A DNA stretch of 64,000 nt from Eutreptiella sp. 'Long Island Sound 2002' (GCA_964036045.1 OZ038378.1:155248001-155312000); one strand, 5' to 3'. Numbered from the stretch's first letter, positions 47,301 to 63,382 are shown. Made by a program: numbers and translations. The notes: generated by a model not told the origin, from the letters alone.

Positions 47301-50300
47301 GGCCGACAGAACGCAGCGACCCGACGCAACATGCGAAGGGGAGAACGGGTGACTGTCCAGGGCCCCGTAACGAAACAACAACCCGCCGGAATGTCACACG
47401 GGGGGGGGGAGGGGAAGAGGCCGCCAGAGGAGGCCACGCCCCCCTCCTACCGGAAGCGCGCGTCGCTGGGCGGCAGGGGACCTTGAATCACGCAGATGGG
47501 CTCCGGCATTTTGGTGGTGGAATGGTCGACTGGCGGCAGCAGCACAAACAAATGATGGGCCGGGGCGTCGGACATCAGCTGCAGATCGTTCGGCTGGTTC
47601 TTGTAGTGCGAAGAGATGTACAGGCTCATCATCTGCTGGAGGAGGTCCTGTGGGCAGCCAGGGGACCGGGGGTTTGGTGGTGCGCTGGTTCAGATGCCGA
47701 GCGGCCGGGCAGAGGGGCAGACAGAACCGTCCGCAAAGCGCCGCCGTCCGACCCCCGCAATCTGCACCGCCTGCCCCGGTGCACCGCCCGCCCAACATCA
47801 CCGCCTCCGGCCAGGGAGCGGGGGCAGACGGCTGCACCTCCCGCCCTCAAGCGGCTGACAAGACGCGGGCTGCACAAGAAGACCCGCTGCGGGTTGGTCC
47901 AGGGAAACGAGGCGGCACTGGGGCCCGTTCATGCGCCTGCCCCCACACCCTCTACTCCCCTGCCCCCTATGCCCCACCGGGACGCTCCTGAGATGGGCAG
48001 CAGAGGACGCGGGGGTTGGGAACGAGGGGCGGGGTGTTTGGGGCAGGCTATTGCTTACCACAGGGGGGGGGGGGGGGGGCGTCTCCTCGCTCTTAGACGC
48101 GACCCCCCCCCCCGCCCTCAGTAGAAGTGGGCCGAAGGCCCCTGGGGGGGGGAGTCTAGCCGCCGAGGAGGGCTTCTCTAAGGGACTAGCTAGTCGCTGC
48201 TAGTTGCTAAGGGGGGGGGGGGGGCTGATCAAAATTTGCCTGTAGCCATTGACCCTTGGTAACTAAGTGGGCCCCTAGGGCAGAGAGGGGGGGGGGAGGG
48301 AGGGAGTCGCGTACCCAAACCGAGGAGACGCCCCCTGTGTTGCTTACGGACCCCCGGGGGGGGGGGGGGTTGCCAGCCCCCGGCCGACCCACCCCCCCCA
48401 CCCACATCAGAAAAATTTTCCTCGGGCATAAAAAGAAATCTCTTGAAGGGGCCGGAAATTTGAGGCCGATTTCAGGGACACAAACTGTTCTTTGGCCTCT
48501 GACCCCACCCCCCCTCCCTGAGCAATAGCCTGTGGTTAGGGGCAAGGGGAGAGCAGGAGGAGAGTCAGGGGGATGCCTCTGCCACCCGGTGGTAGGGCCT
48601 GGGTAGGGGCAAGGGGAGAGCAGGAGGAGGGTCAGGGGGATGCCTCTGCCACCCGGTGGTAGGGCCTGGGTAGGGGCAAGGGGAGAGCAGGAGGAGGGTC
48701 AGGGGGATGCCTCTGCCACCCGGTGGTAGGGCCTGGGTAGGGGCAAGGGGAGAGCAGGAGGAGGGTCAGGGGGATGCCTCTGCCACCCGGTGGTAGGGCC
48801 TGGGTAGGGGCAAGGGGAGAGCAGGAGGAGGGTCAGGGGGATGCCTCTGCCACCCGGTGGTAGGGCCTGGGTAGGGGCAAGGGGAGAGCAGGAGGAGGGT
48901 CAGGGGGATGCCTCTGCCACCCGGTGGTAGGGCCTGGGTAGGGGCAAGGGGAGAGCAGGAGGAGGGTCAGGGGGATGCCTCTGCCACCCGGTGGTAGGGC
49001 CTGGGTAGGGGCAAGGGGAGAGCAGGAGGAGGGTCAGGGGGATGCCTCTGCCACCCGGTGGTAGGGCCTGGGTAGGGGCAAGGGGAGAGCAGGAGGAGGG
49101 TCAGGGGGATGCCTCTGCCACCCGGTGGTAGCTAAACAGCGTGTCCCGATTGACGTAGTACAACTCGCACTGGTCCGGGTGAGGGCAAAGGGACTGCTTG
49201 CTCTTCAGAGGGGTATCCATGCAGAGGACAGTGTTCAGCCATTTCTCCACGGGGTCCCGGGGGGCATATCTGTAGACAGCAGCAATGCACGAGAGGCGGA
49301 GGTTGATGCTGAGGCGGAGGTCGGCAGAAGCGACGCGAATTGGAGGCCGCATCTGCGCTGGCGATGATCAACCAAAACAAAACAGCGATAATCCAGCCAA
49401 AATGCCACGCTGGCATCGTAGCAAGGCCCACAAATCGTGCAACGTACACACTTGCAGTATCCAATCTGACGCAGTACACATGTCAACTTTGAGAAACAGT
49501 CTCCACACTGTCAGTTACTGCGATGGAGTTCAACGCATACAACTCCTTCCCAGTTGATGACATCCGAATGGAAAACAAATCTACATCTTCAGAGCCCAGA
49601 CGATGGCAAACCACTCAGCAGCCCGCCTGGCGATGCGCTAGGCAGGCTATGAGGAGCTGCTGCAGTTTTGCAGGGTCTAACTAGCACAGCGTCCTTTGAC
49701 ACTGGTATTCGGGCAGCTCCACCAGAGCAGCAGCTCAAAAGGAAAGCATCAGGTCTCCCTGTGCCCCACATAGAGCCCTGTTTGGACAAACCAGGGACCA
49801 GTTTCCAGCGACATCAGTCAGTGCCAATCAGGGCTAAGCAGTGCCATCTATAAAACCTCTCAGTGCCATCCGGAATTTATGTTTTGTGGATTGTGACTGA
49901 CAAGCAATGGAGGAGAGGAGACATGCGCACCCATAGTTCCGACTTGTGGCCGGCATAAACACACCTACACTTTGCCCCCTTGCGGAGGAGGCCCCATTCC
50001 CGTGCCCGTTCAAACACATCGCACTTCCCGGCGTGCTCACCGGATACAAAGCCACTCCAAAATTGCCGCAAAATGGTCCAATAGCCCAATTCGCAGACCC
50101 CAGTCCCAGAACCAATGGTCTACATCCCCGAGCTCAGATCTCGTCTGAGTGCCCTTCCCGCTCGCCATAACCCGAGGAAACGCACACTTTCGCGGACAAC
50201 AAGATCGTGTGAAACGCACAGATGGTGTGCCAGTTGCGAGGGGACCGCCCACGTAGAGCACCGCATACCTGATGGGCTCTGTCAACTGGAAGTGCTTAAA

Positions 50301-60221: not shown

Positions 60222-60288
<67 letters not shown>

Positions 60289-60315
60289 GGGTTGTGGTTG
60301 TGGTTGTGGTTGTGG

Positions 60316-60370
<55 letters not shown>

Positions 60371-60384
60371 GGTTGTGGTTGTGG

Positions 60385-60433
<49 letters not shown>

Positions 60434-60448
60434 GGCTGTTGTTGTTGC

Positions 60449-60502
<54 letters not shown>

Positions 60503-63382
60503 GGTTGTTGTTGTTGCTGTTGTTGCTGTTGTTGCTGTTGTTGTTGTTGTTGTTGTTGTTGCTGGCCACAACCCCGCGCCCTCCTCTCCTCCTGAGTCGG
60601 ACGTGGGATGCGGCTGGTTCTTGAGTTCTGGTGCGAGTGCAGCGGATACTGCCAAGCGAAATGGCACAGAGCTGATTCCTCACGGAACTCAGTTTGCCTG
60701 ATTCACGGCCAAAGGACAACTTTGTGGGGGTGTCCAGAAGAGGGCCAAATCACTGTGGGTGTGCGCGCGCACCACAATGCGCACGCCCACGTGGGTGTGC
60801 GCGCGCGCACCACAATGCGCACGCCCACGTGGGTGTGCGGGCGCACAACAATGCGCACGCCCACGCACAACAGCGAGGCAGGCGAGATCTTGCCGCAGGG
60901 GCCGTCTTGCACAGGGACGCACAGGAAGGTGGGTCACACGTGCCTCCACGCGTGACTTGGGTGCGGTGTGTGAGAGGGCGTGCAGGGCAGCAGCTGCGCC
61001 TGTAGCGCTTTGCACTTGACAGTGTCAGCGGTGCTCCCATGAACAACAGCCTTCACAAGGCCCTCTCGAACATGAGACTCATGGTTTCTGCAGCTCATTA
61101 TTATGCAGCAGGATATCAAATCCAGTCCGTCGGGAATCAACCGCCTTGGCACACACACAAGCGCGCGCGCGCACGCACGCACCCACGCGCGCACGCACAC
61201 ACACACGCACGCACAGAGGCCGTGAAGGCTACAAATCTGGCGAGGCGTGTGGACATAGCCGTAGAGAGGCGATACATCAAACGGCACAGCGTTCCATTGC
61301 CTCGGCAACGCCACGCCCCCTTTGCAGAGGGGTGAGCACCCGAACAAGGGCCCACCCCCAAAGCAAACCCCCACAAAGATACCCAAAGCGGCGGATTTGC
61401 CGCGTCCTCGTGCGGCGGTCACAATGCACGTCGTCCGCATGGACTTCTCCTTCTCCACGACCACAGACATCAAGTCCATAATGATGCGCGCCTGCCAACA
61501 CAACAGCGAATGCAGGTCAGCTGCCTCAGTCATGCCCCGCCTGCCTGGGCATCACGCAGCCTTCCGGCGTTCTTCATGTGCACGCCGCATGCGCCCCCCG
61601 CCACATACACCGGCCCCACCCGAGTCGCATCCCAGCGACACCTGCTTTGGTGCCGGCTTCCAAAGCCTGGGCCCTATGACTGCCCGGGGGCTTCACGAAA
61701 GCGGCCGTCAAACGGCCTAAGAACTTGGGGTACTCGTGGTCGCTTGGGGGAAATCCTTTTCTTCGAAAACCGATTGGGGGCCACCGCGGACGGATGCTGG
61801 TTTGATAACCCCCCCCCCCCAAAATAAGAACCACCTGGGGCTTTCCACCAAGCGGGGCCAAAAATAAGAACCAGCCAGCACTGATGGTTAAGCTGTGAGC
61901 CTAGGAACCGCCCCCAAAAATAAGAACCAGCCAGCACTGATGGTTAAGCTGTGAGCCTAGGAACCGCCCCCAAAAATAAGAACCAGCCAGCACTGATGGT
62001 TAAGCTGTGAGCCTAGGAACCGCCCCCAAAAATAAGAACCCCCCCTGCTACCACCAGCAACTGGGCGAAAAATAAGAACCCGTTCCTATTTTTGGGGGGG
62101 GGTTTAAGATGGATCGGGGTCCCACGGACTATGCCCCACACAACTCTGCCATCGACCCCTCATCAAGTCCGTATATTGGGAGCAGGCGATTGCTGAAGGA
62201 CCCCCGGGGGGCGGGGGTTGTTTGGGGCCCTGGTCGGCCCCCGCCGACAGACCCCCCCCGTGTGACATTCCGTCATGTTGCTGTTCCTTTACGAGGCCCT
62301 GGACGGTCACCCGCTCTTCCCTTCGCATGTTGCGTCGGGTCGCTGCGTTCTGTCGGCCGCTGCGGCCGGTGCTCCCGCTGGTGTCGTTTCCGCGTTCGCG
62401 GAGCCCAGTCGTTGGTGTGTTGGGGCTGTGCGGGATGTGGCGGGATGTGCCGTTTGCGCGTCAGCAGTGCCCAGTAGTTGGCGTATTGGGGGTTGTGCTG
62501 GTTGTTGCCGGGGTTGTTTGACTGCTTTTGCTGTCCCCACACCTTCGTCCTCAGGCCGTCCACAGCCTGCCTCGCTGCGTTCCCCCCCCCCCCCCACATC
62601 AGAAAAATTTTCCTGCGGCACAAAATGAAATTTATCAAAGGGGCCGGAAATTTGAGGCCGACTTTGGGTACACAAACCCTCTTTTTTGGCCTCTGACCCC
62701 CCCACGGGGGGGGGGGGGTCTCCTTAAGCAATGGCCCGATTGGAGGCCAGCGGGGCAACGGTGGTCACAAAGTACTGTAGGCCAGGTACACCAATCCCCC
62801 TGCGCCTTACACACCACTGAAGGGGTCAAAGCGGAGGGACAATGGGCTAATAAAACCACTTCTTTTTGGCTTTGCAGGGGGTCCCTGATCGCTTTTGGAA
62901 AAAACAAAATTGGATGCCCATCCGTACGGGGGTGTGGGTGGCTGTTTGCGCCTTTCTCAGGGGGGGGGATCACCGAAGGTCGGGGGCTGCAAGCGAAATC
63001 TTGAGCCCCACAACTGGGCCATGTCTGCAGAGCACCTGTTTTACTTGGCACCCACGGCCCAAATTTCATCTTTTTTGGCCTTGAATTCTGGATTTAGGAA
63101 AGCCGCATGTCAATATCAGGCAGAGCTAGAGCACACTGAAGCTCGAAGCGATGGAATGGCGTTGTGGCTCACAGACGTGCCTTGGGCTCGTTTGTTCCAC
63201 ATTTATGGGGACGGGTGTCGTAAGATATGAATATTGATACTTGGGGGACGACTCCTGCTGAACTGCAGCATTGAGATTGGTGTCAGCAACACACAAATCA
63301 GCACCTGATCTGCAGTGGCTGCAAGCTTGACGAGCGGCCCGATGATCTTATTGTCTTTCAGCGCGTCTTGCGTGCTCTTGAG
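24319..63382 (-). CDS. NAT10: RNA cytidine acetyltransferase NAT10/Kre33 (3' ~761 aa, 16 exons; 5' part not identified in window)
   Basis: Exons 63305-63382, 61383-61491, 59365-59603, 53718-53853, 50269-50443, 49113-49269, 47482-47647, 46330-46444, 44567-44765, 41950-42109, 38513-38624, 34263-34402, 30168-30286, 29470-29593, 25789-25904, 24319-24459 total 2286 nt, and all junction phases are compatible. Motifs: TAARGRGKSAALG (Walker A), IFVTSP, DEAAAIP, STVSGYEGTGRSLS, SHYKNQPNDLQLMSDAPAH, RIVRIAV, LTGEHT, and a Lys-rich C-terminus. Confidence 0.97.
25789..25904 (-). CDS. NAT10: NAT10 exon (LQHKSIHDLATTELDLGTSQTSALIYKVLKSVSEYLQK)
   Basis: ctgcAG acceptor, AAG|GTGTGC donor; GLQ.K motif. Confidence 0.9.
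26525..26590. repeat. (GGTGAG)n hexanucleotide repeat in a purine-rich tract
   Basis: ggtgagggtgagggtgagggtgagg. Confidence 0.8.
29028..29292. mobile_element. MITE-like element, 16-bp TIR (15/16 match), TSD not clean
   Basis: CAGAGATGTATTAGAA...TTCTAATACATCCCTG; terminus related to the 37753 MITE and to a partial copy starting at 47161. Confidence 0.7.
29470..29593 (-). CDS. NAT10: NAT10 exon (VVYDLIPAIAQLYF...ESAVLMGLG)
   Basis: ctcctcAG acceptor, TAG|GTATGC donor. Confidence 0.9.
30168..30286 (-). CDS. NAT10: NAT10 exon (...MTVYDVKRLAAYAAHSVEIQ)
   Basis: ccacAG acceptor, CAG|GTACGT donor; tRNA-binding-domain motif D.KRL..Y. Confidence 0.88.
30530..30887. repeat. Dispersed repeat family Y (near-identical copy ~33690-33975, partial ~32780-32915)
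   Basis: aagggggctcgaacgacccc...gagaccaccaagaattaacagcgaccatccagaggccaccagg...gccgaaacctttcaaggagcagttgtcaaggaggagggtc. Confidence 0.9.
31997..32260. repeat. Dispersed repeat family Z (other copies ~41130-41385, ~58857-58905, ~59077-59290)
   Basis: ggcacaaggcc...gccaccgctcattctgaccctctgtggg...gtcaacggagccccccggatgac...gcatccagatgc. Confidence 0.88.
34263..34402 (-). CDS. NAT10: NAT10 exon (FYSLLNNSLRSMKIDLALSI...)
   Basis: tttgcAG acceptor, AAG|GTGCAC donor; continues the DF.RRF..LL motif. Confidence 0.88.
35110..35430. repeat. Compound (CAG/CAA/CAC)n trinucleotide repeat
   Basis: Direct reading; includes pure (CAC)n and (CAG)n tracts. Confidence 0.95.
37753..37949. mobile_element. MITE (197 bp), 11-bp TIR, perfect 8-bp TSD
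   Basis: CAGGGATGCAT...ATGCATCCCTG flanked by ggcagcag (37745-37752 and 37950-37957). Confidence 0.9.
38513..38624 (-). CDS. NAT10: NAT10 exon (QNDLTGEHTMIMIK...WLPKFQKDFQKR)
   Basis: tttggcAG acceptor, AAG|GTACGG donor. Confidence 0.92.
38712..39055 (-). repeat. Dispersed repeat family R (other copies 39587-39950, 45124-45263, 47273-47400 inverted, 62260-62580)
   Basis: Shared tgtgacattccgtcgggttgttg...gtcgctgcgttctgtcggccgctgcggccggtgctc; one end is constant and adjoins a C/G run, the other end is variable. Confidence 0.9.
40672..40866. repeat. ~200-bp duplication (second copy ~41478-41676)
   Basis: acagacttgcca..gcgtctgccagctcagacatgat...tttcctgccagacactagtggcatgtttggt. Confidence 0.85.
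41950..42109 (-). CDS. NAT10: NAT10 exon (LPHLL...DYICTSFGVTLPLFEFWQKSGFTPVYVRQ)
   Basis: atgcAG acceptor, AAG|GTACCC donor. Confidence 0.95.
42198..42458. mobile_element. MITE family W copy, perfect 8-bp TSD
   Basis: CACGGGGGGG...CCCCCCCGGG flanked by gtcccggc (42190-42197 and 42459-42466); body shared with 59639-59853. Confidence 0.85.
44567..44765 (-). CDS. NAT10: NAT10 exon, GNAT core (FSKLSGVRIVRIAVSPDYQRMKYGSKAL)
   Basis: cggcAG acceptor, GAG|GTGTGA donor. Confidence 0.95.
45686..46067. mobile_element. MITE-like element with imperfect long TIRs, no TSD found
   Basis: CAATTGAGGGGGTGGGG..ATAGAGCCCCC versus GGGGGCTCTATT..CCCCACCCCCAAATG. Confidence 0.5.
46330..46444 (-). CDS. NAT10: NAT10 exon (CEEGAVSV...GKRSSGDLVPYAIAQNFQEP)
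   Basis: ctcgcAG acceptor, GAG|GTACGT donor. Confidence 0.92.
47482..47647 (-). CDS. NAT10: NAT10 exon (DLLQQMMSLYISSHYKNQPNDLQLMSDAPAHHLFVLL...)
   Basis: cacAG acceptor, AAG|GTCCCC donor. Confidence 0.95.
48044..48532. mobile_element. MITE-like element with 12-bp TIR, no clean TSD
   Basis: CAGGCTATTGCT...AGCAATAGCCTG; internal modules shared with ~52865-52950 and ~62585-62710. Confidence 0.55.
48537..49131. repeat. 67-bp minisatellite, 9 copies, overlapping the 3' end of a NAT10 exon
   Basis: gcctctgccacccggtggtag at 48575, 48642, 48709, 48776, 48843, 48910, 48977, 49044 and 49111 (exact 67-bp period). Confidence 0.97.
49113..49269 (-). CDS. NAT10: NAT10 exon (YAPRDPVEKWLNTVLC...VNRDTLFSYHRVAE)
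   Basis: ctacAG acceptor; a GAG|GCATCC GC donor keeps the gap-free alignment to the conserved SYHKASEAFLQRLM (the in-frame GT alternative ends at 49122). Confidence 0.92.
50269..50443 (-). CDS. NAT10: NAT10 exon (RSLSVKLMQKLK...QLTEPIR)
   Basis: gtgaAG acceptor, CAG|GTATGC donor. Confidence 0.92.
50978..51387. mobile_element. MITE-like element with internal inverted repeats, no TSD found
   Basis: GAAAATTACTCTGCGGGGGG near the left end and CCCCCCGCAGAGCAATTTTC near the right end, each 11 nt inside CTGGG / CCCTG termini. Confidence 0.5.
53718..53853 (-). CDS. NAT10: NAT10 exon with Walker B (AEMLVVDEAAAIPLP...STVSGYEGTG)
   Basis: ttgtcAG acceptor, CAG|GTGTGT donor. Confidence 0.95.
54585..54668. 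repeat. (AAT)n-rich microsatellite
   Basis: aataataataataat tract with degenerate upstream units. Confidence 0.85.
54850..55019. repeat. 105-bp tandem repeat; the second copy is interrupted by the P-like element and resumes at 58591-58640
   Basis: ctaatggggctgtgccttctatcgagatacgagg...gtatggcatagatgagattggagatggatccga; copy 2 stops at gtatggc and continues as atggatgagattggagatggatccgac after 58598. Confidence 0.9.
55442..55640. repeat. Subterminal ~62-bp tandem repeats within the P-like element
   Basis: gggtgccca(a/g)tcc core occurs four times; tcaccgcttcatggggtgccca... units at ~55498 and ~55560. Confidence 0.85.
55943..57871 (-). pseudogene. P-like transposase fragment 2 (catalytic Glu region plus C-terminal Cys/His clusters and Ser/Lys-rich tail), 642-codon open frame
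   Basis: LLGSQPNEDLYSLLRCMEHNRNF resembles the P-transposase SQDxLExxFSxxR...N motif. It is followed by CLFC-x11-H-x3-H, CGFC-x6-C-x12-C and CPVPMC-x11-H-x4-H. Confidence 0.75.
57849..58270 (-). pseudogene. P-like transposase fragment 1 (GTP-binding insertion region)
   Basis: FNPKDKQHVEYGLQLL resembles the P/THAP9 motif NPxDKMxVxxAxQ. It is 5'-truncated at a minisatellite and frameshifted relative to the next ORF near 57870. Confidence 0.7.
59365..59603 (-). CDS. NAT10: NAT10 exon (GFANIFVTSPAPENL...HRQTIQYISPQ)
   Basis: tcaaAG acceptor, CAG|GTACAC donor. Confidence 0.95.
59639..59853. mobile_element. MITE family W copy, perfect 8-bp TSD
   Basis: CACGGGGGGG...CCCCCCCGTC flanked by gcgggggc (59631-59638 and 59854-59861). 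Confidence 0.85.
60222..60563. repeat. (GTT)n microsatellite, ~340 bp, with GTG/GCT variants
   Basis: Direct reading. Confidence 0.98.
60755..60870. repeat. ~35-bp tandem repeat, about 3 copies
   Basis: gtgggtgtgcgcgcgcaccacaatgcgcacgcccac. Confidence 0.8.
61383..61491 (-). CDS. NAT10: NAT10 exon with Walker A (TAARGRGKSAALG)
   Basis: ttggcAG acceptor, G|GTATCT donor. Confidence 0.95.
61861..62040. repeat. 56-bp tandem repeat, 3 full copies plus partials
   Basis: aaaataagaaccagccagcactgatggttaagctgtgagcctaggaaccgccccca starting at 61861, 61917 and 61973. Confidence 0.92.
63305..63382 (-). CDS. NAT10: NAT10 exon (LKSTQDALKDNKIIGPLVKLAATADQ)
   Basis: ctgcAG acceptor, CAG|GTGCTG donor; matches the segment preceding Walker A. 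Confidence 0.85.

Follow-up and report, generated by a model that had tools for sequence, protein, structure and literature searches.

A minisatellite that repeats a splice donor of the NAT10 gene in Eutreptiella

The window, a 64,000-nt stretch of the genome of Eutreptiella sp. 'Long Island Sound 2002', carries on its minus strand a member of the NAT10/Kre33 family of RNA cytidine acetyltransferases, and one intron of this gene contains a tandem array in which the intron's own 5′ splice site is repeated. The gene was assigned to the family by its GNAT_acetyltr_2, helicase and tRNA-binding domains, which are colinear with those of solved Kre33/NAT10. The exon upstream of the array (49113..49269) matches chains of yeast Kre33 and human NAT10 (E 4e-15) and is ~63 % identical to the human NAT10 chain, and the downstream exon (47482..47647) matches PF13718 (GNAT_acetyltr_2, E 6.5e-24) and Kre33 (E 1.4e-20). 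The homology searches were run exon by exon, and exon joins were computed only for reading frames and junctions. The closest full-length relatives are kinetoplastid NAT10s, followed by a cluster labelled Euglena mutabilis, which is 78 % identical.

The UniRef protein P0295, which bears the species label Eutreptiella gymnastica, is exactly reproduced by the window from residue 245 to residue 1005, in 16 exon blocks. The gene spans at least 39 kb of the window (24322-63382, minus strand), with 16 exons for these residues and introns of 574-5,511 nt, 14 of the 15 being slidable GT-AG introns, mostly in the context AG|GT...CAG|G. One of them also houses a trinucleotide microsatellite, TGT/ACA, with ~114 copies and 90 % matches at 60222-60561. 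NAT10 is single-copy in the assembly, and the genome search found neither a second NAT10 copy nor an array-free allele, although a second allele may have been collapsed during assembly. The features around the array, in the direction of transcription, are the following:

49113..49269, minus strand: NAT10 exon, residues ~490-542, ending ...LFSYHRVAE (exact match to P0295 490-542; junction solver)
49116..49121, minus strand: unused GT site, in frame, CGG|GTGGCA, 9 nt upstream of the GC donor and present in every unit
49107..49112, minus strand: GC donor in use, GAG|GCATCC, the first of nine identical copies, in the only canonical pair that fits the transcript-derived protein
48577..49112, minus strand: eight identical 67-nt units, each 45 nt intron-like and 22 nt exon-like, with the donor at the end
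48533..48576, minus strand: ninth copy, partial and older, the original 5′ intron part up to the MITE
48044..48532, minus strand: 489-nt MITE with TIR CAGGCTATTGCT, directly after the array (inverted-repeat detection)
47648..48043, minus strand: remainder of the 1,465-nt GC-AG intron, with a C-rich tract and CAG at 47650-47648
47650-47657, minus strand: acceptor side of an in-frame, unused CAG...CTG pair that fits the nonconventional-intron code, TGG-CAG ... CTG-CCCAC|A
47482..47647, minus strand: next NAT10 exon (DLLQQMMSLYISSHYKNQPND...), start of the GNAT domain (exact match to P0295 543-597)

Among the ~11 tandem arrays listed in the window, the one at 48533-49131 is the strongest by a wide margin, and it is recognized by TRF as a single array with a period of 67 nt, 8.9 copies, 99 % matches and a score of 1184. 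It is 599 bp long, in phase, and bounded by the unique exon on one side and by the MITE on the other. Each unit contains the last 19 nt of the exon and the initial ~42 nt of the intron; the exon's last 19 nt form the last 19 nt of the 22-nt part, whereas the 45-nt part holds GC, CTGAC, a C-rich tract and CAG. When the units are registered to the exon end, the first eight (49112-48577, minus strand) share 100 % identity, and the ninth differs from them by one substitution (C14T) and two 1-nt indels. The junction ...CTACCACCGGGTGGCAGAG|GCATCC is present nine times across the array, and in a genome-wide search the 67-nt unit was found nowhere else in the 2.28-Gb assembly. With head-to-tail units of a size between 10 and 100 nt and of high identity, the array is a minisatellite.

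Much of this had been proposed in the first-pass annotation. Its identification of the gene as NAT10 is backed by PF13718 and the Kre33/NAT10 chain matches, and the exons that it placed at 49269-49113 and 47647-47482 are exactly right when compared with the transcript-derived protein. The 67-nt unit of 45 + 22 nt is confirmed by TRF and by the unit alignment, the exon end is indeed the first copy and is followed by eight more (nine donor copies were counted), and the GC donor, the CTGAC branch-like motif, the pyrimidine tract, which is C-rich, and the CAG are present in each unit. It had also described a diverged last unit after identical ones; the ninth, partial unit has three differences against none in units 1-8. 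The structural reading, a serial duplication of a NAT10 donor, was correct. The account of the unit stood as far as it went, but it had missed that the organism is a euglenid, a group with intron rules of its own, the GT that lies 9 nt upstream of the GC, and the fact that CAG|GC is a transposon terminus.

Transcript-derived proteins reveal which of the nine donors is used. P0255 (833 aa, from a 4.6-kb JGI contig) was recovered by a word search that used the part of a kinetoplastid-like relative around the junction, and its 90 % cluster also contains P0294 (718 aa, 3.0-kb contig) and P0295 (1,005 aa, UniRef). Single-exon searches did not find the own-species fragments, only a full-length kinetoplastid-like query succeeding, and a scan of the JGI contigs for a nucleotide-level cDNA did not find an own-species contig. 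P0255 carries the domains PF05127, PF13718 and PF13725. Since the contigs of P0255 and P0294 are far shorter than the >39-kb gene span, they represent spliced transcripts. P0255, P0294 and P0295 all read ...LFSYHRVAEDLLQQMMSLY..., i.e., YHRVAE|DLLQQ, and therefore splicing leads straight from the first donor (49113|49112) to 47647 in three of three transcript-derived proteins, without a micro-exon; no micro-exon inclusion was seen in the three assembled transcripts. This join of 49113 to 47647 is the outcome that had been named beforehand as refuting a functional reading of the array. The assembled transcripts represent the dominant isoform only and may derive from a strain in which the array is absent, and the array may give rise to minor NMD-sensitive isoforms.

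For the array-bearing intron, the junction solver, run against P0295, admits AG-AC, GG-CA, GC-AG or CA-GG borders, of which GC-AG is the only canonical pair; the intron is therefore a 1,465-nt GC-AG intron (49112-47648), presumably of the U2 type. It is the sole exception among the window's 15 introns, the other 14 having a GT-AG solution. The same border is favored by the protein family, in which all of 100 NAT10 relatives have 16 residues between [FYW]H and [SAG]HY[K/R], with an invariant E at position 4. Three in-frame cut options exist within 9 nt, and only GC-AG reproduces the 16-residue spacing. One of the other two, the GT site, pairs contiguously with U1 from -3 to +3, two wobbles included, and its U1 complementarity is better than that of the GC donor in use. 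This donor is rejected: it would delete VAE, including the invariant E, and VAE is present in three of three transcripts.

The remaining option is of the nonconventional kind known from euglenids, for which the code is N3-CDG at the 5′ end and CH'G-N5-6|R at the 3′ end (PMC12501133). The real borders do not follow this Nomura code, as positions +4 to +6 read TCC (CAT, ATC or CCC if slid), with 7 nt between the CTG and the exon; when tested as in Gao et al. (10+U7+10), they show a terminal pairing of 0.0 kcal/mol. The pair TGG-CAG ... CTG-CCCAC|A reaches a terminal pairing of -6.9 kcal/mol, with weak pairing just inside CAG/CTG. A nonconventional intron with these borders would delete VA and give YHR-E-DLL with a 14-residue spacing, and it is contradicted by 100 of 100 relatives and by three of three transcripts.

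At its 3′ end, the array-bearing intron reads ...cccccggtcccctggctgcccacag, i.e., a C-rich polypyrimidine tract and CAG. This is the pattern of conventional introns in E. gracilis (PMC11170887), the intron statistics quoted here being those of E. gracilis and E. agilis, close relatives rather than the species of the window. The U1 of this genome begins UAACAUACCUG, which makes CAG|GUGUGU its ideal donor, the one also reported for E. gracilis. The GC donor in use can form base pairs with this U1 at -2, -1, +1, +3 and +4, and GCATCC has a C at +5, whereas a G at this position is the only prominent donor feature of E. gracilis GC-AG introns (PMC11170887). U1 snRNA genes are found at a minimum of 42 loci above the Rfam cut-off (e.g., C2:172194675-172194843); several of them are locally clustered, on C5 near 4.92 Mb and on C18 near 46.1-46.5 Mb, and the inspected copies all start with UAACAUACCUG. 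A U12-type intron, judged by an RTATCCTT donor, a branch site TCCTTAAC at a distance of 10-26 nt from the acceptor and genomic copies of the minor snRNAs, was also considered and rejected, as the donor shares only ATCC and the branch consensus is absent near the acceptor. U12, U6atac and U11 were not found genome-wide, against 42 matches for U1, a weak negative in which the best candidates alone were scored.

The MITE that adjoins the array belongs to an extremely abundant family, with 4,634 first-look candidates genome-wide, and eight other genomic copies can be aligned with it from exactly CAGGC onward, with unrelated flanks. The intron-like part of every unit closes with ...CCCAGGC, and CAGGC is the first 5 nt of the MITE. 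Since the other copies align from CAGGC, the "CAG acceptor" of the unit lies within the first five bases of the MITE. No trace of the unit is present in the sequence downstream of the MITE; as the start of the MITE lies inside each unit and no such trace follows it, the MITE insertion precedes the tandem duplication, and on the sequence evidence this order of events can be taken as established.

The history of the locus then comprises three steps. The MITE entered the GC-AG intron of the single-copy NAT10 gene ~44 nt in; a 67-bp segment, from exon position -19 to MITE position +5, was next duplicated in tandem; and amplification or homogenization produced the eight extra identical copies, leaving the distal ninth copy as the older version. 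The first duplication may have arisen by slippage or from a break at the MITE end that was then repaired.

Several further observations concern the MITE. Its ends and flanks (CCA-CAG ... CTG-CCCCA|A) fit the euglenid nonconventional-intron code, though the element lies inside a conventional intron. A candidate target duplication, CCCCTAAC / CCCCAAAC, is imperfect (8 bp, 7/8) and needs the left end to lie 2 nt further out. A second, more diverged copy of the family, whose TIRs have 1-2 mismatches, occupies 62183-62738 in another NAT10 intron, and a perfect 56-nt tandem repeat of 3.3 copies (61858-62040) lies ~140 nt from it without abutting. A tandem duplication adjoining a MITE was not seen as a recurrent pattern within the window.

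What the additional copies would do, if used, can be predicted. Splicing from a downstream GC donor without further splicing would add 67n nt and yield ...YHRVAE-ASP-stop. The units could also be spliced individually, as 45-nt GC-AG or 54-nt GT-AG mini-introns, leaving micro-exons of 22 nt (GC donor) or 13 nt (GT donor). In E. gracilis, GT-AG introns go down to 41 nt and GC-AG introns to 44 nt, and sizes peak below 60 nt (PMC11170887), so that mini-introns of 45 and 54 nt would be admissible in size. In silico, the frame is kept with zero, three or six micro-exons only, and inclusion of all eight shifts it; with these exceptions, inclusion leads to a premature stop or a frameshift, as is expected of a poison exon. 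The frame arithmetic of the earlier annotation, in which one micro-exon shifts the frame and three give a stop-free 22-aa insert ending in YHRVAE, thus holds. From -19 to beyond +45, the nine donors do not differ in sequence, and their predicted local accessibility is equally low. An RNA structure favoring the first donor was rejected, the predicted accessibility being the same for the nine copies. With identical donors and equal predicted accessibility, the preference for the first copy has no explanation in the sequence, and the exon context upstream is all that sets this copy apart.

Taken together, the array is probably a young intronic minisatellite that straddles a splice junction, is selectively neutral or slightly harmful, and has no evolved function. 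Repeats of this kind are common in the group: in E. gracilis, tandem repeats make up 9.85 % of the genome (PMC11252322) and 3.2 % of the bases in introns (PMC11170887). In the assembled transcripts, splicing connects the first donor (49113|49112) with the usual acceptor (47648|47647), so that the entire array goes out with the 1,465-nt intron. The first donor presumably wins because it alone stands in a real exon context, while use of the decoys would be minor and would end in premature stops and degradation. Being unique and very young (its units are identical and postdate the MITE), the array cannot be a conserved regulatory device. Three proposals of the first-pass annotation are not supported by these results. 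A poison-exon or tuning cassette is unsupported, with the clean isoform in three of three transcripts and an array too young and unique, and the conservation of such a cassette is missing from eight identical, post-MITE units found once in the genome. A recursive-splicing cassette likewise finds no support in an array too young and unique to be an adapted device. Intron gain is contradicted by the absence of a new intron from the mature mRNA, whose product aligns colinearly with all 100 relatives, with no segment added or removed.

A different view of the same locus is that downstream donors, or the 45-nt and 54-nt mini-introns, are used in a meaningful fraction of the pre-mRNA, giving degraded mRNAs and a lower NAT10 output, in which case the array would be a mildly harmful mutation or a tuning device. 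We consider this unlikely. Nine identical donors without a predicted structural difference would invite such use; the CTGAC, which precedes a C-rich tract and CAG|G by 33 nt, corresponds to the conventional 3′ splice-site pattern of E. gracilis, in which introns of 41-60 nt are common (PMC11170887); all aberrant paths other than those with zero, three or six micro-exons are out of frame or stopped; and NMD-like loss of mis-spliced mRNA has been reported in Euglena (PMC12501133). However, three of three assembled transcripts carry the clean isoform, a young and unique array is no conserved regulator, the only usable branch A of the 45-nt GC mini-intron lies 12 nt from the donor, and the GC donor is without the +5 G that is prominent in E. 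gracilis GC-AG introns. That the units are truly spliced as 45-nt GC-AG or 54-nt GT-AG mini-introns, with a ladder of 22- or 13-nt micro-exons mostly destroyed by surveillance, is quite improbable. If it were true, the locus would present a live birth of introns and micro-exons from a duplicated exon-intron junction and a transposon terminus, and a natural nine-way contest of identical donors, with a reduced output of an essential gene as its consequence.

The clean mRNA of the three transcripts is compatible with a stepwise (recursive) removal, in which the first donor is spliced to the CAG of a unit, the resulting junction GAG|GCCC serves as a fresh GC donor, and so onward until the same mRNA is reached. 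A GC follows the CAG of each unit, so that the juxtaposition of acceptor and donor (CAG|GC) exists, yet the regenerated GAG|GCCCUA forms just three base pairs with U1 (at -2, -1 and +1), an intron of 1.5 kb needs no such device when other NAT10 introns reach 5.5 kb, and the array is too young for an adapted one; we give this path very little credence. There is similarly scant reason to suspect that the array, its copy number or the perfect identity of its units is an artefact of assembly or polishing and not real in the organism. Direct support for an artefact is lacking, although short-read polishing of repeats can yield perfect identity and may have exaggerated that of the units. Against it, the array measures only 599 bp, is in phase and is flanked by unique exon and MITE sequence; mis-joining from another locus is impossible, the unit being absent elsewhere; and the ninth copy has real differences.

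Related arrangements are known from other systems. Zhuo et al. reportedly described in 2007 (PNAS) human genes in which tandem arrays give rise to alternatively spliced introns, and spliced repeat products are said to have been observed. The NAT10 array resembles those in having donor-like and acceptor-like signals in each unit and hence many potential introns, but its three transcripts show no repeat splicing and it lies wholly within an existing intron. Eperon et al. (1993) are reported to have found that duplicated 5′ splice sites compete in mammalian model substrates, the one nearest to the acceptor tending to win when all are occupied. There, as here, identical tandem donors compete for one acceptor, whereas the NAT10 transcripts use the farthest (first) donor.

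Among euglenids, the intronic minisatellites (VNTRs) of E. gracilis (Gao et al., 2024, PMC11170887) are alike in their head-to-tail units of tens of bases, their high identity and their more diverged edge copy; the NAT10 array differs in that it starts inside an exon and multiplies a functional donor, not anonymous intron sequence. In the Rogers model, introns are gained by tandem duplication of an exonic AGGT (reviewed in PMC3488318). Here too, a tandem duplication provides a second donor and an acceptor-like site, but the NAT10 segment spans an existing exon-intron junction, its CAG comes from a transposon end, and no new intron appears in the mRNA. The nonconventional introns of euglenids (PMC12501133; Gao et al., 2024) belong to the same organism group, and a code-obeying in-frame pair lies near the NAT10 borders; the real borders, in contrast, are GC-AG with a terminal pairing of 0.0 kcal/mol, and the product predicted by the code is absent from the transcripts.

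As it stands, the locus is a curiosity, a repeat of an ordinary kind in an unusual place. It is also a natural experiment, in which nine donors, identical over no fewer than 19 nt on the upstream side and 45 nt on the downstream side, face one acceptor in a single-copy essential gene, and it could show how the euglenid spliceosome picks a 5′ splice site by exon context. In addition, a MITE terminus (CAGG...) can provide a ready acceptor-like signal, which bears on transposon-derived introns in euglenids.
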